Positions 10,965 through 26,337 of a stretch of 64,000 nucleotides of DNA are shown piece by piece. Origin of the DNA: Blastocystis sp. Blastoise. Its lineage: Eukaryota; Protista; Bigyra: Opalinata. The translations under genes were made by a program, and so were the position numbers. Under the pieces are notes generated by a model. It saw only the letters and a program-made list of their open reading frames with translations. It searched no databases and had not been told where the DNA came from. The stretch's first letter is position 1, and each line of letters opens with the position of its first letter. Location of the stretch: contig JBBPEB010000029.1 of assembly GCA_039096225.1 (NCBI GenBank), positions 124,001 to 188,000 on the forward strand, written 5' to 3'.

Positions 10965-11564
10965 TTAAAGATTCTTACATACTTCAGGTTTAACACCTTC
11001 ATAAGCATCACAAACTTCTTTTGATAAACTATTAGTATCTTTAACAATGACGTGATTAACCATAAGTAATGGAACAGAATCATGAGCAGGAGTAGCGTCA
11101 CCACATTCAAGATGAAGTAATAAAGCTTCAGGACCATTAAAACAAGAAAGTATTGTGTTTACATCTAATCCAGTTTCTTCAGCACATCGAGTAGCCTCTT
11201 CGTCGTTAACAGTAACAATACGTTCAGCACAAAGAATAAAAGGGAAATAAGTAGTAGGATAATGTTTCATTCCACATAATTCAAGCATATTTCCACGACA
11301 TTCATTTTCACCATGTTGACAAACAAATGTAGGAGGATCTCTAGTAATAGTTTTTGCATTTCCATAAGGATAAAGATGTAAATCAGTAATATTAGCAAGT
11401 GCAGCATTCTCCATATGATCCTTAAGTGTATATAAAATAAGAACAGCGCATCCAGGGCAATCCACTTCATAATAGATATCTACAGGAACTTTAGGAGCAT
11501 CACTACGTAAATTAGAGGCTACAGCACATAGAACAAAAACAAAAATTAAATTAATAAAACGCAT
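10965..11564 (-). CDS. GILT: Gamma-interferon-inducible lysosomal thiol reductase (GILT) family, secreted, intronless
   Basis: Signal peptide, VDIYYEVDCPGC (CxxC), YPYGNA, and the GILT signature CQHGENECRGN. Confidence 0.93.
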   Translation of the reverse strand: MRFINLIFVFVLCAVASNLRSDAPKVPVDIYYEVDCPGCAVLILYTLKDHMENAALANITDLHLYPYGNAKTITRDPPTFVCQHGENECRGNMLELCGMKHYPTTYFPFILCAERIVTVNDEEATRCAEETGLDVNTILSCFNGPEALLLHLECGDATPAHDSVPLLMVNHVIVKDTNSLSKEVCDAYEGVKPEVCKNL

Positions 11565-11623: not shown

Positions 11624-11635
11624 ATGAGTTTTGGA
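11624..11635. repeat. Target-site duplication, left copy (12 bp)
   Basis: ATGAGTTTTGGA immediately before the left TIR; identical copy at 23937-23948. Confidence 0.92.
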
Positions 11636-11686
11636 GAGATAAATCAGCCTATACAGTAGAATTGTTAAAAAGTCAGACAATACAGT
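11636..11686 (+). repeat. Left terminal inverted repeat (51 bp)
   Basis: GAGATAAATCAGCCTATACAGTAGAATTGTTAAAAAGTCAGACAATACAGT is the exact reverse complement of 23886-23936. Confidence 0.97.
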
Positions 11687-13779
11687 AGGGTATGGGAGTA
11701 TCCCAACGTCTCCGAGTATGACTAGGTGTATAAAATAATTATGGGGATAACTTATATTTTAAATAACTGCTAGGGGTATTATATATATATATATGGATTG
11801 AATATTGAGTATGTATATATATTATGCCTTATTATACATATGATGACATATATAGAGTAGATTTAGGTGAGGTTCGTGAAAGTAATTGGGGATTGCCAAT
11901 TAGGTATGCTTATATAGGTCTGATATTGCTTATGTAAACTTATATAGTTATGTTGAAGTGGTTAGATGAATAAGCAAGTCATATTAGACTTTTATCATAA
12001 TGGTCGACATTTGGCTGTCAAAAATAGTCTTTGGGTTATATTATTGATGTATATTATTATATAAGTATGTATTATATCTAAATAGTATATAGGAAACCAT
12101 ATTAAAGAAATATTGATGGAGAATTACAATTACAGAATGTGGAGTTATCTAGAGGTTTGTTTTGTCTTGTTCAATCCCATTATGGTATGACTAGTATATA
12201 ATAACATTATTATCAATATATCTTCTCTAGTTGTATAGAAATGGCAGTTAATTGATGTTCAGGAGTTATTATTGTTTTTAATATTTAACACTATCGTTTA
12301 GTCCTAGATGATGTATAGTACTATTATGTGAATTATTATATGATTAACTGATGTTATTGGAGAGTTATGGATGATTATATATTCAAAATAAAAATAATAA
12401 AAATTTTAGTAAAAAGGTATATTATGATTCTTTTGTCATTTATTTATTCTTATTGTTGTTATATATGCTTATTATTTGATATATATATTATAGAATTATT
12501 ATTTCAACATATTTTCCTGGTCTATTATTGTTATTAATACTACATATAATATTTATATATGTTTTATTATGTATATTGTTATTCTATATATTATTATTTT
12601 ATTATATTGTTAATTACTATTATATATAGAAAAAGTGTATTAATGATCGAATGAATTCATTTATATGTTTATTTGAAGTATGTATTATATTTATATATAT
12701 TGTATATTTATATATATTGTATATTTATATATATTGTGTATTTAGATATATGTGTATATATTATATATATATATGTATACTTATATATTTATTGTATATA
12801 TATAGAATGATGAATTTTTGTTATTTCTTTCTATCAGGGGAAAATAATTGTATATATATATAATATTATATATGTTCTTTTATGTATATTGATCCTATAA
12901 TGATTGTATATGCTATATATTAATATTATTCTATGTACTAATTCTTGTTTTAAATAAATATGCATGATATATTATATTATTATATAGATATTATATATTT
13001 TCTTATTATACTTTCTATTTCAGACAATTTATATGAATTAATTACTATTTATATATGAATATTTTTAGTATATTTATTATCATTTATATATATAGTAATG
13101 TCATATTCTAGAATTATTGAGACTGTGTATCTTTCAACTTTATATTGATGTATATAGTTTATATATATATATATATATATTCCTATATACTTTTTATGAT
13201 GTTATATATAATTTTTATTACATAATATATATACTAGTCTTGTTGTATATAGGATGTGCTCGTTCTATCTCTATTATTAATAAAGTTATCTTCTAGCTTG
13301 TTCATTCATAATATTATATTATGTATGTATATTATTCTATCTATTTATCTTGTTTTATATTCAATTTTTTATACTTTTCTTATAGTATATATATAACTCT
13401 ATAACTTGTATTTATTTAATAATCGATATATATATATATAGACTTTTTATTACAAATAGTCAAATATACTCATATTTTAGGATATACTTTATTACCTGTT
13501 GGATTCATAAAATTATTTTGCTTTTCTTGATGTAAATATGTTCAACTTGTATATATTTATTATCATTATTTACTATATATATATATGTATGCATATTTTT
13601 ATGTTTTATATATACTATATTTATTTTTTATAGGTATATTATTTATGGTGTTATTATTATTTTTGTTGGGTATCTTAAAAGTATGTAGTATCGTATATAA
13701 TTGGTATTTATACTATAGACTTGTTATGTACATAGCTTTTATGTAAATATATATGTTGATATATATATATATTTAATAT

Positions 13780-14480
13780 ATATAGTTATTATTACATATG
13801 TTTTGTATATTCGTTGTATAATTATATATTTATTATTATATATAGTTGTTATTATATAAAGTTGTTATTATATATTTATATATATAGTTATTATTATATA
13901 TAACTGTTATTATATATAGTTGTTATTATATATTCATTATATATAGTTGTTATTAGATTTATTATGTATAACTGTTATTATATATTTATATATATAGTTG
14001 TTATTATATATAGCTGTTATTATATATAGCTGTTATTATATATAACTGTTATTATATATAGTTGTTATATGTATATTTTTATGTATATTTATTATTATAT
14101 ATAGTTGTTATTATATATAGCTGTTATTATATATAGTTGTTATTAGATTTATTATATATAGTTGTTATTATATATAGTTGTTATATATATTTATTATATA
14201 TAGTTGTTATATATTAATATATGTATTTGTTATATGTATTTATTATATATAGTTGTTATATAGTTATTATTATATATAGTTGTTATATATAGTTATTATT
14301 ATATATATTTATTATATATAGTTATTATTATATATATTTTATATAGTTATTATTATATATATTTTATATAGTTATTATTATATATATTATTATATAGTTA
14401 TTATTATATATATTATTATATAGTTATTATTATATATAGTTATTATATAGTTATTATTATATATATTATTATATAGATAT
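13780..14480. repeat. Degenerate minisatellite (TATATAGTTGTTATTA / TATATAGTTATTATTA-type units) inside the MULE
   Basis: Dozens of visible imperfect copies, unit length roughly 14-20 bp. Boundaries approximate. Confidence 0.85.
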
Positions 14481-16585
14481 TATTAGCTTTTCTTCGTTTA
14501 CATTCCTCTATATATGGTTTTTTACAAATATGTCTATATATTTGCCATGTATATAAATATTATTTATATTGTTTATTAATGCTTATTATATATATAGTCA
14601 TTATAAATATGCTTATTATATTATTTTCTTATTATATAATTTGTTTATTATATACATATACTTATTATATACATATACTTATTATTATATATTATACTTA
14701 TTATATATAAGACTATATATATACTTATTATATAATACACTTATTAAATATATTATATATAATGCTTATTATATATATAATATATAATGCTTATTATATA
14801 TATAGTTATACGTGTCCATGATTAACCTTCTCCATTATGCATATATTGTGTAAGATGTATATAGATCAATAAGATAGCGTACTTATAATATATATGACTT
14901 GTATAACTCAATAAATAAAAGTATATATATATATAATAATAATTATTATTATTATATATATATATATTGTTTTAAGTCATCGAATCTATTTTTATACGTT
15001 ATTAACTCTTGTTTCTTATATGACTTCTTTTTATATTATATACAATTACTGATATATATATGATATATATATGATATATATTTCCTTCGTTCTTTTTCTT
15101 TATAAATCATTTTGGTTTCTAGATTTAGTACAATATATTTATAGATATCTTTTTTACTGTTTTGTATTTCATAACTTTATAAGTAATATATGTTTATATA
15201 TATTTAATTCTATTCTATATATATAGTAATAAGTCGATAGCCTTTTATATATCTTCCTGGTTTCAATGGCATAAAAGTTTCGTTGAAGTCTATAATACTT
15301 TATATTTTCATTATATTATTCGTTATACTTATTATATATATATATAGGTTTATGTTGCTCTATGAGTAAATAGTATTATATATTATATACTTATTCTATT
15401 GTTTTATATATAACTTATCCTATTCGTGTATATTCTTTTATATAGGTTTCTGCAAATTATATTTCTACTAATGCATATGAGATTTCTTTATGTATATAAA
15501 TATATATATATAGTTTTCTACACTATTTGATATTTTATATATTTAATTTCTTTAAACTGTTTTTCTTTTTCTATCTCCAATTATATTATTATTTCATTAA
15601 ATATAATATATATACTATAGTTGTTTTAGTATATAGTCTCTTCTGAATTCTAGTATATCATATGCATCTATCATTCCTTATCTGTATATATATATAAATT
15701 TAATTCTTTAGTATACTCATATTTTATATCCCTTTCCTTCTTATACTATTATATATCTTTTATAGAGAATTCATATATATATATATCCTTTTATATGCTT
15801 CTAATCATGAATACAGTACTTGATCTTTTTTCAACTGTTGGTGATCAATCTCCTTATCATCCTATATTACTCTTTATAAGAAGATTTTTAGTATATATAT
15901 ATAAGTATATATATATAAATACTTATATATAAAGATAATTATATGTTAATATGTACTTGTATATATACTTATATATATACTAGTATATAAGTTTATATTA
16001 ATATATATATACTTATATATACTAATATATATCATATCTATATGTATATTATCTTCAATATTCTCTATAGTCCATCATTTTTAACTATTTGTAACTTATT
16101 ATCTTTTTATATTATATACACAGTATATATAGTCTTCATTTATTAGAAAACATCTACAATTAAAATATGTATATAGATCTATACATATATAATTTTTGTA
16201 CAATTATATTTTATTATTTTATTCATTATATCTAATATATACTTATATTAATGCTTATTTATTCTCTCTGTCCTTTATTTATATCTTTATACGCTTTTAT
16301 TATTCTATATAAATTATTTATAATCTTTATTGTCTACATCTTTTATACTATTTATACGACTGTACATATTTTCTATTTTATTTCGCTATAAAATATTTAT
16401 TTATTTAGTGTTTACTCCACTTGTTCTACAAATATAAGAAATCATTATGGATATTCATTAACAATATAGTATAAATTATGTGAAAACTATTATACTAATA
16501 GTTATATACATAAAAATTTATATATTGTTTATATGTTTTTCTTTAAGATTTTGTTTTTATTGATTATATCAATAGTTTTAACACT

Positions 16586-16653
16586 CCTTAGACTGTTTAT
16601 GGTCAGTAGCAATTATTATTGAATTGCTATCAGGTTCAATTCCTGATCTAATG
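16586..16653 (+). ncRNA. tRNA-like cloverleaf with Pol III B-box (non-canonical, putative)
   Basis: Stems TTAGA/TCTAA (16588-92/16647-51), CTG/CAG, TAGCAATT/AATTGCTA with 7-nt loop, and TCAGG/CCTGA with loop TTCAATT. B-box GGTTCAATTCC; T-run downstream at ~16667-16673. Confidence 0.4.
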
Positions 16654-18635
16654 TCATTTATTGTTATTTTTTTAAATATTTTTAAATATTTTTATTTATA
16701 TATATTATATTCGTTTACTCTTCCATTATACAGATATATAGTACATTGAGATATTTAATCAACTATGTATATGGTCAGTCGCTCTCCTATAATGTTTTTA
16801 TTTTGCTTTTCCCAACACACAACACATTGCTAATTAGATGCATCAATTATTTTCTATATAAACTATATTTCATTGATTCATCATTATATACAATTCTAAG
16901 CATCAATAAAACATTAAGATTCTGAATAGACTTCTTAAAGTGAATCAACTGGACATGCATTTAAGAATATTAACTTAAAATGAATTAAGGTAGTTAATTC
17001 AAATCTAAAACATATTTATATCCAATTTTAACCTTTGTGATTTAGTTTCTATTGCTTTTATAAGGTCTATAATACTGATCATCACCATTAAATTCAAAAT
17101 AGGATTCTAATCGTTCACTGTATAACATTCAAATAGGTTTTGCTACTCATAACTTCAAAAATAAATAGAATTAGCTTCTTCTCTCACGACGAATTTTAAA
17201 AACTACTAATTACATGCCTAAAAAGAGATTACTACATATTTTTGAGCTTCATTCAGTATTACTGATCAGTTGATCAACAGATAAAGCTTGTAATTTCATA
17301 AAATAAGATAATTGACAAAAATATCACCTTCATAATATAGAACATCTATCATCTGTGTGAAGATTATTTGAGCTAAGAATACCATTCATAACATAATTTA
17401 CAATAAAATCAAATATGAACATAACATCAATCCATTAAACCACCTAGTTTTGATATAAAAAGTAGCGTAACGATCAATACATAGCTTAGAGAGCAGTAAA
17501 TAAGTAACAAATAATTAATAATAATTAATAAAGGTATTTTGAATAGATAAATAACATTTAATCAAAATTTACTAATGTTTTTTTAAGTAAAGTTAGGGAA
17601 ATGGTATAAAAATATAAATATTTTGTTATTTGCATGTTTGAAGCATGCATAAGCATTTATAAAGCTATTATAAGTGTATTAGAGTAGGTCAAAGTCACCA
17701 TTGCCAATGGATTAAAGTATAGACTTACTTATTTTCAAAGTTGGTATTGCGATTCAATGTAGAAATCTAATCAACTTACTTATTAAATCAAAACAAAGTG
17801 TTATTGAAGCAATGATTAAGTGGCGGGTGTTTTACTTATTCTGGATTGAACATTCCTTCATTAAACTGATTAGAAACACTTATTCAAACACTGGTTGTAG
17901 TCTTTAGGATAGTCTTTATGGTAATCTTCAATTGATTTCAAAAGAAAAGGTCTTCGAAAGATGGTTTTCTCTGTTTCAATGATGATTAAACTGTGCTACT
18001 AATACAAAATGATCAATATAATAGAGGAATAAAGGTATTTATATATAATCATATAATTTGTATCTTATCTTAATCTTAGTTCATTATTATCTATATTATA
18101 CTATTGTATATCATTATATATATGTAAATATATCAATACTATTCTGAATCTAATACATTTTTATAGAATGATTCCATTAATTGTGTATGTGTAAAGGTGA
18201 TTATGTAATGTGTTTTACTTCGAAAAGGCCTCATAATGAAGTTTTGATATATGTCTTTTAATTATTCAATGTTTCTTAATGATGATATAAATGAATATAT
18301 ATTTTGAGTATATATAATATATATTATATATTATACTTATGTATTTATATTGTTTTTAACTATATTGTATATACTATTTTATATTTAAATTGTATTTATA
18401 TTGATTATAGATATATAGATGATATTGATACAGTATAAACAAACAAAACAATGAGTATTATAAAAAGAAGATATAAATAATGTATATATATATATGTAGA
18501 TAGATATAAAATATTTATTTATATTAGTATATATATAGATGATAGATAAATAAGGATATTAATCATATAAAGAATAAATTGTATATTAATAAATAAAGAT
18601 ATAATTATATATGATGATTATTTAGTATAATATGA

Positions 18636-21600
18636 TTATAAAAGATCGATTCTGTCTTCAAATGGGATACTTCTCTTCACATAAGGGATTCTCTTTCTCT
18701 TCTTCTCCATATTGGTCTCAGCCTTTCTCTTTCTTCTATTTACAACTGGTTTCCCTCTTTTCTTCATTGCATAAGCTGGTTTCAATATTTGAACTTTTGG
18801 TATTTCATCAAGTATAGTAGATGGAATCAACCTATATAAAGTATATATCATATATATTTTTTTAATAATTATAATAAGAATATATATTGATTTATTTATT
18901 TATAGAAATAGAATACTATTAAGAATTATAATATATAGATAGTATATAGATGGTATAGAGATAGAATATAGATAGTATATAGATAGAATATAGATAGTAT
19001 ATAGATAGAATATAAATATTATAGAGATATTATATAGATAGTATATAGATAGTATATGAATAATATATAGATAGTATATAGATAGTATATAGATAAAATA
19101 TAGATAGAATATAGATAATATATAGATAGTATATAGATAGTATAGAGATAGAATATAGATAGTATATAGATAGAATATAGGTAATGTATAGATAGTATAT
19201 AGATAATATATAGATAGTATATAGATAGTATATAGTATACATATAGATAGTATATAGATAGTATATAGATAGTATATAAATAAAATATAGATAGAATATA
19301 GATAGTAGATAGATAGTAGATAGATATTATATAGATAGAATATAGATAATATATAGATAGTATATAGATAGTATATAGATAGAATATAGATAGTATATAG
19401 ATAGTATATAGATAATATATAGATAGTATATAGATAGAATATAGGTAATGTATAGATAGTATATAGATAATATATAGATAGTATATGGATAGTATATAGT
19501 ATACATATAGATAGTATATAGATAGTATATAGATAGTATATAAATAAAATATAGATAGAATATAGATAGTAGATAGATAGTAGATAGATATTATATAGAT
19601 AGAATATAGATAGTAGATAGATAGTATATAGATAGTAGATAGATAGTATATAGATAGTATATAGATAGTAGATAGATAGTATATAGATAGTATATAGATA
19701 GTAGATAGATAGTATATAGATAGTATATAGATAGAATATAGATAGTATATAGATAGTATATAGGTAGTATATAGGTAATATATAGATAGTATATAGATAG
19801 TATATGGATAGTATATAGATAATATAAAGATAATATATAGATAGTATATAGTATACATATGGATAGTATATAGATAGTAGATAGATAGAATATAGATAGT
19901 ATATAGATAGTATATAGATAGTATATATAGATAAAACATAGATAGTATATGGATAGAATATAGATAGTATATAGATAGTATATAGGTAATATATAGATAG
20001 TATATAGATAGTATATAGATAGTATATAGATAGTATATAGATAGTATATAGATAATATATAGATAGAATATAGTATACATATAGATAGAATATAGATATT
20101 ATATAGATAATATATAGATAGTAGATAGATATTATATGGATAGAATATAGATAGTAGATAGATAGTAGATAGATAGTATATAGATAGTATATATATACTA
20201 TATAGATATTATATGGATAGAATATAGATAGTATATAGATAGAATATAGATATTATATAGATAGAATATAGATAATATATAGATATTATATAGATAGAAT
20301 ATAGATAGTATATAGATAGTATATAGATAGTAGATAGCAGAATATAGATAGAATATAGATAGTATATAGATAGTATATAGATAGAATATAGATATTATAT
20401 AGATAGAATATAGATAGTATATAGATATTATATAGATATTATATAGATAGAATATAGATAGTATATAGATAGTATATAGATAGTATATATATAGTATATA
20501 TATACTATATAGATATTATATAGATAGAATATAGATAGTATATAGATAGAATATAGATAGAATATAGATATTATATAGATAGAATATAGATAGAATATAG
20601 AAAGTATATAGAATCTATAGGATATATATTTATACTATTCTACTATTATCTATATACTATCTATACTATATATACTATCTATATAGTATATATATATATA
20701 CTACATATACTATATATACTATCTATATACTATCTATATTCTATCCATATAATATATATATACTATCTATATACTATCTATATACTATCTATATACTATA
20801 TATATCATTATATACATATAAATATATACTCTCCATCATAGTTTTGATATTGATTTCTATAAATTTGATTATTCACATTTCTTAATACTCGTGGAATAAT
20901 ATCAGTATTATTATTTCCCTTTTCTATTAAGTACCGAAGGAAGATTATAGCATGTTTACAGGGAGTGTGTTTGTTTTGGTATTCCTTACATTCACATGTT
21001 TGCTTTTCTAAATTTACTATATAGCTAACACCATCATTTACAACAGCAGAAACTCCATCTTTCTTTTCTTTTATATAATACTTCTTATTCTTGATTCTAT
21101 TATATATATTATCAAAACAAGGTAAGAAAACATTATCAATAGGAATACTAGTTTTTATATTAATCTGTTTTGTAATACTATAGTTATAGATACATAGAAA
21201 CATTTTATGAATAGGAATATTTCTAAAACGTTTTAATACTCTATTGTAGCTTTCAGCTACACTTGAGGAAATATACCATTTACAAATTGAATCATACTTT
21301 TGTAAACTTTTATTATTCTTTTCCCAAACTTCAAGAACTTGACATCTAAGATCTTCATCTATAATCTTTTCTGCTTTTTCTTTTGCTTCTTCAAAAGTAG
21401 AAGCTTTATAACTATCTATAATATATTGTTTTGTACGTAAGTCGACTCGAAGATGATCTTGTAATAAATGGAAGAAACAGAGAATATGGGGATAGTCAGG
21501 AAATACCTTTTGAACTGCCGACTTGATCCCCTTAGCTTGGTCAGAAACAATAGTAAATGTTTGATTACCATATTGACTCATTAAAACCTTCTTTAATGAA

Positions 21601-23726
21601 GATAATAAAGTAACCCAAGCTTCTTCACTTTCAGATGGAAAGAATCCAAAACCAAGACATATGGATTCATGATTGATATTAACAGCTATAAAGAGTAATA
21701 GTAATAGTAATAGTAATAGTAATAGTAATAGTAATAGTAATAGTAATAGTAATAGTAATAATAATAGTAATAGTAATAGTAATAGTAATAGTAATAGTAA
21801 TAGTAATAGTAATAGTAATAGTAATAGTAATAATAATAGTAATAGTAATAGTAATAGTAATAGTAATAGAAATAGTAATAATAATATATATATATTACCT
21901 GTTATAACTAAAGTAACAGTACTTCCAAGACCCATAAACGTTCCATCTAGGAAAATAACAGGAGGAGAATAATTTAATAATTTAATATTTTCACCAATTA
22001 AGGTACAACAACATAATAATGATTTATTATTATTATTTTCATCTATAATATCATCAGTATAATCAACAGTATTAAAATCAATTTTATTATTGACTGTTTT
22101 TCCATTATATAACATATAAAAGGCTCTATTATTTGAATTACTAGTATTGAGCTGTTTTATTATCAGAGGTATATAAGAATATGATATATCATCATTTAGA
22201 AGAAACCTCGTTGTAGAACAATATATTATATGTCGATTAATTGAAGGAAACAATGAATGTAGTTCATTAATAATATCTTTAGATATCATTCCTTTATATT
22301 TTTCATGACATAATAAATAATTATATACAAATGTACTATTTAATGGACTTCTAAATAATAATCTAAAGTTTGTATTAATATAACTAATATTAGGTTTATC
22401 TTTACTTTGACTAATAACATTCTCAAAGTATTCCAATGAAACAGATCGTACAGGAGTTGTTATATTATTAACCTTGTCTTTAAACCCATTCATTAATACT
22501 TCATCATCTTGACTATTATTGTTTATATCAATATCACTTTCTTCCTCATTTTCTTTCTCATTTTCATAATCATTTTCTTTTTCTTTTTCTATTACTTCTT
22601 CTTCTTCTTCTTCTTCTAATATATCATCTATATACATATCAGGGAATGTTTGATTATTTATTCTTTTTTCATTATTTTTTTGCATCTCATATAATAATAA
22701 ATCCATTTCAGAACTCATATAAACTCTTTTCTCAAGTATAAGATCTTTTTTTCTGAATTATTTCAGTTTCTATTTCAGTTAAAGGAGTATCATCTATTCT
22801 TTCTTCATATTGTAATGATTCATCAATATTCACTTCATGATTATTATTTTCTTTAATTTGATTAGAAACTAATTCCTTTTCTAATAGTTGAAGACCAGCT
22901 ATATCTATAATAGTATTTCTATCTTGTTCATTATTATTATTAGGTATTTCTTTATTATCATTATTAATAGGTATATTATTAGTTGTTATATTAATTTGTT
23001 TTTGATAATAGTCACAAACAGATTGTTTTATTCTATTTTCCTTCATAAGTTCTATATAGTGAGAAGTAAATTTCGAACATTTCTAAATAAATAAAATAGT
23101 TAATATATAAAAATATAGTTTTTATTAATAAGAGAATTGATAGTATATATAGAAAATATTATTTTAATGTAAAATATAATAAATATTGTAATTATATATA
23201 TTTATACATCTGTATCATGTTGATGGAAGTGTGTTAAGTGATATTTTCCATCTTTAAAGTTGTATTGAATTATGTAATTGCATTCCCATGATGGGACATT
23301 TGTATTTGACATATTGTTTTGAACTTCTTTGAATCATCATAGAATAGCCATTACTATATGCAGATAATCTTAAAAAAACCTCAATCTCTTCTCTTGACCC
23401 AAATTCAGGGCGAATGTTGAAAAGTAACGATATTAGAAAATTCCTATAGATAATGCATAGGTAGTTTGTATAATCTCTGAAAAACCCATTAAAACTGTTT
23501 TCTTCAATCAAAGAGGCAATCTGATTTTGGTCAATGTTTTTAAACATGCTAAAAGTTGTTTTTGTTAACGGATTCACTCTTGAATCCTTATCAGGACGTC
23601 TCTAGATATTAAAATATTTATATATGTGTAAAATACTTATATGACGGAAGGAATGTGTTGAACATATTGAGTAAAATCCTCATTTTCCACTTCCTTATCT
23701 ATTCTGTCAATATCCCGTCTATCCAT
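18636..23726 (-). CDS. MULE (MuDR-like) DDE transposase, multi-exon, with two +1 frameshifts in the N-terminal part
   Basis: N-terminal C-C-H-H zinc finger (YKC..EC..HQH), FLDGTF, SDQAKG, CFFH, AESYN, SWIM CECKEYQNKHTPCKH, and C-terminal KKRGKP. Introns 23083-23207, 21686-21898 and 18832-20829 splice in frame. Start ATG at 23726 is tentative. Confidence 0.9.
18930..20805. repeat. 11-bp satellite (ATATAGATAGT and variants) filling the last transposase intron; orientation flips at ~20620
   Basis: Well over 100 visible copies of TAGATAGTATA/TAGATAGAATA/TAGATATTATA. The last ~180 bp read TATACTATCTA (reverse complement). Confidence 0.95.
21693..21880. repeat. (AGTAAT)n microsatellite inside the 213-nt transposase intron
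   Basis: About 30 tandem hexamers; source of the poly-Leu and poly-SN runs in the ORF track. Confidence 0.95.
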
Positions 23727-23885
23727 TTAAGTCAAATTTAAACAAATAGGTCGAATATGGCAAAAATTAATTATTAGTAGAAAACACATATAGTTTCTTG
23801 ACTGGGAATTTTACAACATATTTGTATTATATTCTAGTCGCCATTATGTTAAAAATACCGCGGGTCATAGGACCCTCTGGAAACG

Positions 23886-23936
23886 ACTGTATTGTCTGAC
23901 TTTTTAACAATTCTACTGTATAGGCTGATTTATCTC
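23886..23936 (-). repeat. Right terminal inverted repeat (51 bp)
   Basis: ACTGTATTGTCTGACTTTTTAACAATTCTACTGTATAGGCTGATTTATCTC, exact reverse complement of the left TIR. Confidence 0.97.
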
Positions 23937-23948
23937 ATGAGTTTTGGA
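23937..23948. repeat. Target-site duplication, right copy (12 bp)
   Basis: ATGAGTTTTGGA immediately after the right TIR. Confidence 0.92.
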
Positions 23949-24225
23949 TATTCCCCATGGATATTTTTTTATGAGAAATTCCCGTGAATATAACAAGAAA
24001 AAGAGTAGAATCTACCATCACAACACAGAAAAATGATAAGATAACAAATAGTTTCCATGAAGTGATTTCATCCATATTCAGAATGGTTTTTAATATCAAG
24101 TTATTTTAAGGAGTATAAAAAATGAGATAATCGTGGATTTTTTCTAGAGAAAGCTTTTCAGAAAAATTAAGTTTTGTTATAAAGAATTTTATAATTGCGA
24201 TATAAAGCGTATAATACTAATAGGA

Positions 24226-24662
24226 ATGGTAAATATGATTGAATATTGAATATAACATGATATAGTCTAAGGAAGTCATATTAGATTTACAAAAATATAA
24301 AGGTCAAGGTGTCCGAATCAAGTTTATTGGTGGAAGAGAAATTACTGGAGTTCTTAAGGGTTTTGATCAACTTTTGAACATTGTCCTAGAAGATGCCTCA
24401 GAATATTTGAGAAGTATATGTCTGATATTGTTATTTATAGGATATGGATATGTTTTTGATGATACAATTATAATTATGAATGATATAAGTTCAGTGTTTT
24501 CATATTTATTTAGATGCTGAGGATCCTGATAGTATTACTACAGAAACAAGAAAGATAGGAATAGTTGTATGTCGTGGAGTTTCGATTATGTCCATAAATC
24601 CTATTGTTGGTATGAAAGAAATAGAAAATCCTTTTGCTGCTGTGAAAGAAGGAGATATATAA
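24226..24662 (+). CDS. LSM7: U6 snRNA-associated Sm-like protein LSm7 (3 exons; first coding exon is only the ATG)
   Basis: M|SKEVILDLQKYKGQGVRIKFIGGREITGVLKGFDQLLNIVLED..|..RKIGIVVCRGVSIMSINPIVGMKEIENPF. Confidence 0.93.
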
Positions 24663-24887
24663 ACAAATTGTTGCTATACTATAAAGAAATTCATAAATTG
24701 AAAGAATAATTGTTGATGTTTTATTGTTTATTAGTTTTGTTTGATGGCAGAGTAGATATTTAGATTGTTTCTACTCATAGAAGAGAATTCTTTGTTTCTT
24801 GACAAATAGTATTTATTAAACAAAAAACATTTGGAACACAATTGATGATAGACTCTATTTTTTTAATTCTTTATTTCAATTAACAAT

Positions 24888-26337
24888 TTATATATTATTT
24901 TCTTGTTCTTGTAATGATTGTAGATATTCATTGAGATTATTCTGTAAGGATGGGTCTTGTAATTCATACGGGTATTGATAAAACATCTGTTCAGCAATCT
25001 GTGTACCGGGATTCTCTTCTAAAACGACATACAACGGTTCTACTGGCTCTTCTATGATTTCTATATCATTGTTTTCTTCTCCAGAAATATTTACATTCGT
25101 ATTTTTTGGTTTTTTTATGATTTCTATATCCTTGTTTTCTTCTCCAGAAATATTTACATTCGTGTTTTTTGGTTCTTTTATGATTTCTATATCATTGCTT
25201 TCTTCTCCAGAAATATTTACATTCGTATTTTTCATTTCTATAGCCAAATTCTTCGGTTTATTCTGTTCACGTTGATTGATTTCTTCACATTTCTCTTCTA
25301 ATTGTTCCATAGATATTAATAATGGATTCATTTCTTTTGAAAATGGAGAGAAATCCAAAATATATATATTATCTTGTTTATCAACATATACATCAAGAAC
25401 AACTATATATACATAAAATGAGAAGAATATGAATATTGATTGAATACTATTTTATATACATACAATTCTCTAATGAAAAACGATCTACAACAATGGTTTC
25501 TACAAATTTCATTAAAATAGACTGTAAATGATCTTTCGATGATTTTAAGAACGAATAATACGTTGCTGAATCTTTCTGAGTTATAGCAATTAAGAAAGAA
25601 TGATATATAAAGAGTCTGAACTGCATAGAAGGAAACATTGTTGCCCATTGTAGTAATATGAGTTGAGGACAGAGACTCTTAGATATTCCATTTGACTCCT
25701 GTTTACATGAATTACTATAGAAATATTTATCATTATTCTTTTTATTAATAATATAATAATATTTGAACAGGGTACATATAAACAAATAGATCAATAAAAA
25801 AAATATACATCTTTTGATAATCACTTTGAAGGATGCCACTACTTTTTAGAAACATAAATACATCTCCTGGAGTTTCACACTTCAAATTACCGGTCATCCA
25901 TAAACAATCCTAAGAATAATTATTATTATACTTATTATTACATGTAGATTATATAGAAAAAAAATGAAAAAAAATACTTTCGGTGAATTCCAATTAGATT
26001 TTGGAAAGCAACAGCCATCTAATTCATTTATTGAATCATTAATCATAATTTCTAAATCTTCAAAAACAGGAGGTTCGACCTCTTCTTCCTCAGGAATATC
26101 TTCATCATCTGAATCAACTGATTCAACCGTATTTGATTCATATCGCGGATCATAAACAGAGGAACAAATCATTTTAGGTAATAAAACACCATCTGTAAAT
26201 AAGTATTCAATAAAATCATCTGATAATGAGATTGATCGAGACTTAATTGCATACTTTTTGAAATAAGGATACCAACAATCGTGTGAACAAGCAAGTAGAT
26301 CCTCATAAGATGATGTTTCGGGTATTCTAGAAGTCAT
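24888..26337 (-). CDS. CDC123: CDC123/D123 (eIF2 assembly ATP-grasp protein)
   Basis: CSHDCWYPYFK, FIEYLFTDGVLLP, FPKSNWNSPK, LILLQW..MQFRLFI..LIAITQ, IYILDFSPF. Confidence 0.88.
25050..25235 (-). repeat. 63-bp coding tandem repeat x3 in the CDC123 C-terminal exon
   Basis: KNTNVNISGEE(S/N)(N/K)DIEII(K/E)(E/K)P repeated three times. Confidence 0.9.

Follow-up and report, generated by a model that had tools for sequence, protein, structure and literature searches.

What kind of element occupies some 12.3 kb directly upstream of a GILT-family gene in a Blastocystis genome, and what accounts for its length? No eukaryote of the human gut is commoner than Blastocystis, and the element lies on contig 19 of Blastocystis sp. 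'Blastoise' (tortoise isolate Rus-B), in a stretch of 64,000 nucleotides that was analysed as a whole and is called the window here. The evidence throughout consists of the assembled sequence and a database gene model. It indicates that the element is very probably one copy of a young, autonomous cut-and-paste family of Mutator-like elements (MULEs), the length of which comes from repeats and a tRNA-like cloverleaf and not from genes, and that the copy in the window is disabled as assembled. The element belongs to the Mutator/MULE superfamily by its transposase domain, its CxxH motif, its terminal inverted repeats (TIRs), its target site duplication (TSD) and its copies at several sites.

The element spans 11636-23936 in window coordinates (12,301 bp). 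The exact 51-bp TIRs and the exact flanking duplication described by the first-pass annotation were both confirmed, and the ends are laid out as follows.

11624-11635, no strand: left copy of the TSD, 12 bp, ATGAGTTTTGGA, read directly
11636-11686, plus strand: left TIR, 51 bp, starting GAGATAAATCAGCC, exact reverse complement of 23886-23936
23886-23936, minus strand: right TIR, 51 bp, exact reverse complement of the left TIR
23937-23948, no strand: right copy of the TSD, 12 bp, ATGAGTTTTGGA, read directly

The inverted match ends at base 52, and the heptamer ATACAGT occurs twice in each TIR (positions 16 and 45). The TSD could not be reduced to 10 bp because each copy directly abuts its TIR. 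A search of the 33.3-Mb assembly with the 51-mer returned 11 matches without a single mismatch, compared to none for the reversed control; relaxing the search to 3 mismatches, or using the outer 24 nt alone, gave no further matches in the genome, and metagenome contigs scanned for exact matches to the first 30 nt of the TIR yielded none. Pairing of the ends, as had been proposed, resolved the 11 matches into five TSD-flanked elements and one fragment.

Contig 19 (window copy): 12,301 bp, TSD 12 bp
Contig 16: 12,299 bp, TSD 10 bp
Contig 14, second copy: 11,487 bp, TSD 10 bp
Contig 18: 11,485 bp, TSD 9 bp
Contig 14, first copy: 30,807 bp, TSD 10 bp
Contig 15: end fragment, 126 bp

The five copies are thus distributed over four contigs, with unrelated flanks and a direct duplication of their own at each site. 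Copies free of nested insertions measure 11.5-12.3 kb, and the 30.8-kb copy represents the contig-18 type with three nested insertions, so the expectation of an unusually large family was borne out. No non-autonomous derivatives with the same or near ends (up to 3 mismatches) were found in the genome.

The transposase gene lies on the minus strand in six exons and is of the MULE type with DDE, CxxH and SWIM motifs. On the contig-18 copy, six exons exactly reproduce the annotated 892-aa protein WA158_004538 (P0001), and the introns between them all follow the GT-AG rule (35, 42, 125, 177 and 1,292 nt). The exons of the window copy were mapped from this contig-18 model using the same splice signals.

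23637-23726, minus strand: exon 1, ATG at 23726, codon 30 at 23639-23637, mapped from the P0001 model
23486-23601, minus strand: exon 2, mapped from the P0001 model
23208-23443, minus strand: exon 3, predicted N-terminal Cys/His DNA-binding region
21899-23082, minus strand: exon 4, acidic linker and first catalytic D
21686-21898, minus strand: intron 4, 213 nt, (AGTAAT)x32 microsatellite at 21694-21886
20830-21685, minus strand: exon 5, second D, CxxH, E and SWIM finger
18832-20829, minus strand: intron 5, 1,998 nt, 11-bp satellite
18636-18831, minus strand: exon 6, basic C-terminal tail and stop codon

Pfam analysis revealed the MULE domain PF10551 (E 1.8e-16 to 4e-16) and Transposase_mut PF00872 (E 1.2e-10), both exceeding their gathering scores, together with SWIM PF04434. 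In an alignment of the window family with 12 homologues, the catalytic residues D527, D591 and E687, as well as C612 and H615 of the CxxH motif located between the second D and the E, were invariant in 13/13 sequences, and so were C773, C775, C785 and H787 of the SWIM finger. An exhaustive profile-free search recovered about 940 relatives, and the top nine after the query came from the Rus-B genome itself. At least five further MULE families could be recognized in Rus-B, their transposases showing identities of 65%, 58%, 41%, 31% and below; identical copies exist in several of these families. The closest named relatives outside Rus-B were plant MuDR-type transposases with 24-28% identity over the core, while a PDB search for relatives of the protein yielded none. 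Three copies (contig 16, contig 18 and the second contig-14 copy) have open frames of 891-892 aa. The ratio of nonsynonymous to synonymous differences between lineages (pN/pS) was 0.11-0.31 at a synonymous divergence of 0.6-2.2%, and therefore the transposase gene was under purifying selection during diversification of the family. No second open reading frame (ORF) above 72 aa, of the mudrB kind, was found anywhere in the element; a candidate second gene in 16900-18640 was rejected, the open stretches there being only 38-44 codons long.

Identity of TIRs and TSDs had previously been taken as a sign of recent insertion. The conclusion of recency stands, on other grounds: the window copy is young because it shares 99.97% identity with the contig-16 copy, which occupies a different site with a different duplication. 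The use of TIR identity as a clock did not survive, because all 11 ends are identical despite the divergence of the lineages. None of the 102 TIR columns was variable, compared to about 4 expected (Poisson P ~0.02), the expectation being derived from the 4.0% of columns that vary between four lineages over the left 7.3 kb, which is mostly cargo. Since the TIRs are invariant while the lineages differ by 2.0-2.7% elsewhere, the ends appear to be conserved by selection, as expected of transposase-binding sites. The window copy is therefore recently inserted, and the family looks currently active.

Comparison of the window and contig-16 copies revealed 4 differences in 12.3 kb, 1 in the satellite (a copy-specific variant at 20246) and 3 in the coding sequence (CDS). 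A CAA>TAA change converts codon 30 (23639-23637), directly before the first splice donor, to a stop; this codon is CAA in the contig-16, contig-18 and second contig-14 copies, and in the 30.8-kb copy a nested insertion breaks the gene just before it. An extra base at 23285 in the Cys/His region of exon 3 (C3 vs C2) and another at about 22746 in exon 4 (T7 vs T6) each cause a +1 frameshift, and neither occurs in any of the other four copies. Once spliced, the CDS of the window copy accordingly comes to 2,678 nt, which is not divisible by 3. The first-pass annotation had described the transposase as intact; this is correct for the catalytic part, and not for the gene as a whole. The family member in the window was probably disabled only recently.

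The region between the left TIR and the gene, about 7 kb that had been noted as unexplained cargo, is without genes, and can now be read as non-coding repeats together with a tRNA-like cloverleaf. Its components are listed below.

11687-18635, no strand: cargo, about 6.95 kb, 12-31% GC, no ORF above 72 aa
12436-16585, plus strand: T-rich low-complexity tract running up to the cloverleaf, 46-57% T and 56-64% pyrimidine, from composition in 400-bp steps and skews
12686-12804: tandem array, 17 bp
13747-14480: tandem array, 16/32 bp
14577-14804: tandem array
16578-16961, plus strand: shared module of about 380 bp, the cloverleaf with about 300 bp downstream
16586-16653, plus strand: tRNA-like cloverleaf, 68 nt, without linkers, antisense to the transposase gene and followed by a T run

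The cargo is full of tandem arrays with units of 15-50 bp. ORFs above 72 aa were absent from both of its strands, the longest being Tyr/Ile-rich readings of TA repeats, and neither ARAGORN nor Rfam detected a tRNA or RNA family in the cargo or elsewhere in the element. All five copies carry the cargo at 93-100% identity, and as a whole it occurs nowhere else in the genome; apart from the five copies, genome searches with it recovered just low-complexity DNA and the cloverleaf module. Substitution in the cargo between lineages (2.0-2.7%) is similar to that at synonymous sites, and the first 1.5 kb and the segment 17136-17635 vary 3-4 times less than the middle. Within this 500-bp segment (23% GC), 1.4% of the columns are variable compared to about 6.5% in the neighbouring 2 kb, and no ORF or RNA-family match could be found there. 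A Pack-MULE or gene capture origin was rejected, as the cargo shows no coding potential, host exon or genomic parent.

The cloverleaf has an acceptor stem of 6 bp, a D stem of 5 bp, an anticodon stem of 7 bp and a T stem of 6 bp. More than 25 other loci, located inside other repeats of at least 6.4 kb, match the module at 16578-16961 with 70-76% identity. RNAalifold analysis of 14 distinct variants revealed 24 pairs, and compensatory double changes occur in 9 of these; 96.7% of the cells were paired, compared to 30-44% when the partners were slid, and the covariation score was reached by none of 500 shuffles. This covariation argues that the cloverleaf is selectively maintained. The T arm and loop were invariant in all collected variants, where the pattern used to collect them itself included the T arm. 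A covariance model built from the variants detected at least 150 copies in the genome, all at E<=2e-15 and including all 5 copies of the family. In a second MULE family (WA158_002995, transposase 31% identical), the cloverleaf is present in 7/7 copies at a fixed distance of 12.2 kb from the catalytic domain, and the elements of that family are therefore probably longer than 13 kb. The seven copies are identical and lie on contigs 8, 13, 14, 19, 20, 23 and 31 (e.g. C20:55431-56321 and C20:67657-67729), with the cloverleaf downstream of the transposase and on the same strand. A genuine tRNA gene was rejected, given the lack of stem linkers, the variable anticodon loop and the lack of a match to tRNA models: ARAGORN found no tRNA in the window or in 12 related loci, and Rfam gave no tRNA match even at E<=10.

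The remaining extra length resides in the introns. The claim of about 2 kb of intronic satellite was verified, as intron 5 is filled by an 11-bp satellite with the unit ATAGTATATAG, of which about 153 units lie at 18928-20612 and about 16 units in the opposite orientation at 20631-20805, adjoining the 5' splice site and producing an imperfect palindrome. Around the orientation switch (about 20612-20631, region 20386-20805) the arms are about 190 nt long and 78% complementary, and the pre-mRNA of intron 5 could fold back at this palindrome. In the window copy intron 5 reaches 1,998 nt, as against 1,292 nt on contig 18 and 1,348 nt in the second copy on contig 14; this difference between lineages indicates that the satellite array is unstable. 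Intron 4 is spliced out in the P0001 model, and a naive ORF reads it as poly-Leu because the (AGTAAT)x32 repeat keeps the frame. Introns of the human subtypes of Blastocystis are 30 bp long.

The Rus-B assembly comprises 33.3 Mb in 33 contigs with 23.1% GC, and its k-mer signal is diploid (PMC10690189). Compared to the human subtypes, Rus-B has longer introns and intergenic DNA and more low-complexity DNA, about 12% (PMC10690189). The description of the host genome as compact holds in a relative sense only, since Rus-B is the largest and most AT-rich among the Blastocystis assemblies (PMC10690189). The genome paper gives transposons as a bulk share of 5.6-7.5% of the genome and leaves Mutator unmentioned (PMC10690189), Dupeyron et al. 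2019 list no Blastocystis MULE (PMC6446971), and a literature search for Blastocystis and Mutator returned nothing relevant. The family, represented here by a complete Mutator-like element, is new for Blastocystis.

Among published MULEs, TIR lengths run from 14 to 500 bp and TSD lengths from 8 to 11 bp, and their stramenopile hosts include diatoms and Phytophthora (PMC6446971); a TIR of 51 bp is thus not unusually short, as had been supposed. Four copies of the family fall within the TSD range (10, 10, 10 and 9 bp), and the window copy has 12 bp. Arthropod MULEs measure 1.4-10 kb (PMC13359780). The family resembles maize MuDR and the plant MuDR-type MULEs (Jittery, FAR1-related lineage) in its DDE MULE domain, CxxH motif and C-terminal SWIM (PMZ) finger, in its N-terminal Cys/His DNA-binding region and TSD of about 9-10 bp, and in its insertion near the 5' end of a gene. 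The MuDR TIR starts GAGATAATTGCC and is about 219 bp long (PMC2563033), so that both the shared GAGATAA start and the greater length of the MuDR repeat had been stated correctly. Unlike MuDR, the Blastocystis element has a core only 24-28% identical, a TIR of 51 vs about 219 bp, no mudrB and a length of 12.3 vs about 5 kb, and its six-exon gene contains a satellite intron of 1.3-2.0 kb beside a non-coding cassette with a tRNA-like cloverleaf. Assignment to the MuDR clade in the strict sense was rejected on the TIR length (51 bp, not about 200 bp) and the lack of a second gene.

In the short-TIR MULEs of protists and other non-plants (TvMULE of Trichomonas, and those of Entamoeba, diatoms and Phytophthora), the TIRs measure 20-124 bp and the TSDs 9-11 bp, and one ORF encodes the transposase, frequently with a SWIM finger (Dupeyron et al. 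2019, PMC6446971), all of which is similar to the present family; in contrast to these, the Blastocystis element is several times longer, and the additional length is non-coding. Rehavkus of arthropods and annelids is likewise Mutator-related, with an internal minisatellite array and a TSD of 9 bp (PMC6446971), but it has a PHD finger and a minisatellite located just before the 3' TIR, whereas the arrays here lie in introns 4 and 5 and in the middle of the cargo; with no PHD finger by Pfam and arrays elsewhere, assignment to Rehavkus was rejected. Several kb of non-transposase DNA between the ends also recall Pack-MULEs; unlike those, the element holds no captured host exon, ORF or parent, and the only DNA it shares with other loci is the repeat module of about 380 bp. 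The cloverleaf itself resembles mascRNA-type tRNA mimics (the 3' ends of MALAT1/NEAT1) and tRNA-derived RNA polymerase III (Pol III) modules: it has no usable anticodon context, its invariant T arm is B-box-like, and on its own strand it is preceded by a long low-complexity tract and followed by a T run. It differs from both in showing no sequence relation to them, in being transposon-borne and in a conserved module that extends downstream and not upstream. Three features of the family stand out, namely the entirely non-coding extra length, the kb-sized satellite intron in the transposase gene and the tRNA-mimic cassette.

Several points weigh against the interpretation of the locus as a young transposon with non-coding cargo. 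Transposition is read from the assembled copies and their TSDs; the TSD of 12 bp is one base above the published range of 8-11 bp; the splicing of the 2-kb satellite intron is predicted by the database gene model; the cargo is known as DNA; and the lesions could be residual R9 Nanopore errors in a five-copy repeat, two of them falling in short homopolymers. The structure, which is known from the assembly alone, could instead be an artefact of assembly, or a segmental duplication lying between inverted repeats that arose by chance. This explanation is so improbable that it was rejected, since a different direct duplication flanks each of the five copies within unrelated flanks on four contigs, no paralogous partner of the flanks exists and a bona fide MULE transposase is encoded between the ends. 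Within the transposon interpretation, the window copy could itself be autonomous, its stop codon and frameshifts being assembly or polishing errors over a full 891-892-aa transposase such as that on contig 16. The assembly was produced with Flye from R9 MinION Nanopore reads and polished with racon, Polypolish and POLCA (PMC10690189), two of the three lesions are +1 homopolymer changes (T7 vs T6 and C3 vs C2), and all three non-satellite differences fall inside the 2.7-kb CDS, which has a chance of about 0.02 and would be odd for real mutations. However, the CAA>TAA lesion is a substitution and not a homopolymer change, the three rounds of polishing were short-read and repeat-aware, and the other copies have CAA in all three readable cases and neither extra base, while mis-polishing across copies would erase unique variants and not create them. 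An autonomous window copy is therefore possible though doubtful in our judgement, and we lean towards the lesions being real.

The cargo could also be functionless, that is, a neutral expansion of AT-rich repeats together with a fragment of another transposon that happened to hold the cloverleaf. Its divergence of 2-2.7% is close to the synonymous rate, its array lengths vary between copies and only about 380 bp around the cloverleaf is common to other repeats. Low-complexity DNA makes up 12% of tortoise-isolate genomes, where introns and intergenic DNA are inflated genome-wide (PMC10690189). On the other hand, compensatory changes keep the stems of the cloverleaf, which is found in every copy of two MULE families with transposases 31% identical and at no fewer than 150 loci in all; the first 1.5 kb and 17136-17635 are 3-4 times less variable than the middle of the cargo; and all five copies retain the full 7 kb, with no deletion derivatives. 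We regard a wholly functionless cargo as a credible minority explanation. A bolder proposal would be that the T-rich tract and cloverleaf form a functional non-coding RNA unit, acquired independently and needed by large Blastocystis DNA transposons (at least two MULE families), which may act as a Pol III small RNA or as an RNase P/Z-processed 3' end stabilising a transcript antisense to and converging on the transposase gene. This proposal is tentative, and in its full form we consider it unlikely.

Returning to the transposon interpretation, the following course of events can be proposed. The intact sister copies would produce a DDE transposase with a C-terminal SWIM finger, which most likely binds the 51-bp ends, and which would excise the 12-kb unit and re-insert it at a staggered cut of 9-12 bp, the repair of which would give the TSD. 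The window copy is a very recent offshoot of the lineage to which the contig-16 copy also belongs. As it cannot make transposase in its assembled form, it would need to be mobilised in trans. Its extra length derives from about 5 kb of T-rich tandem repeats, running up to the tRNA-shaped element of 68 nt that selection maintains, and from a satellite that has expanded inside the last transposase intron. The former is a non-coding cassette, which other large DNA transposons of Rus-B also carry and which may have a role there.

The window copy landed upstream of a GILT-family gene (PF03227, E 7.5e-25) on the minus strand; the insertion point is 72 bp upstream of the start codon (ATG at 11564), and the left TSD lies 60 bp upstream of it. 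Two other copies of the family lie 250-320 bp from an ORF start. MULEs are known to land near the 5' ends of genes, and these positions fit that habit, five sites being too few for proof. No paralogous empty site or partner of the window-copy flanks was found in the genome. Part of the right flank (24210-24700, from 273 bp past the element) shares 99% identity with contig 5, 775687-776177, and is either a recent duplicate or another repeat; the adjoining ORF (24888-25358, minus strand) contains a repeated NTNVNISGEE motif. The left subterminal 640 bp (11699-12336) show a 68% match to contig 5, 21870-22505, and this match may mark one end of a related family of elements.

The three insertions nested in the first contig-14 copy are as follows.

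Contig 14, 124735-133562 (L012:399-9226): 8.8 kb, CACTATGG... inverted ends, duplication of 3-4 bp, at the end of transposase exon 1
Contig 14, 136931-143371 (L013:2595-9035): 6.4 kb, starting with TC and ending with a GC-rich hairpin and CTAG, between host A and T, in the satellite intron
Contig 14, 144850-148816 (L014:514-4480): 4 kb, kind unassigned, in the cargo, with a host-element duplication of about 22 bp at its bounds

The 8.8-kb insert is CACTA-like and contains a long Glu/Asp-rich ORF; the CACTATGG ends recur in two further stretches of the genome (L025 and L039), adjoining other cloverleaf modules. The 6.4-kb insert is Helitron-like and contains two tRNA-like cloverleaves (L013:2809-2881 and L013:7031-7103).

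The locus therefore provides a fully delimited MULE family of Blastocystis, with ends, TSD, gene model, intact source copies and a pair of copies only 4 differences apart. Strain history could be traced with such a family, or it could be the starting point for building a genetic tool in a Blastocystis lineage that, to our knowledge, is without one. It also illustrates the bloating of elements in the tortoise clade by satellite growth inside a transposase intron. The presence of the cloverleaf cassette in the Mutator superfamily strengthens the case that the cassette is selected and not debris, and if it does act as a functional RNA unit, the family would form part of a sharing of a structured RNA module across transposon superfamilies.

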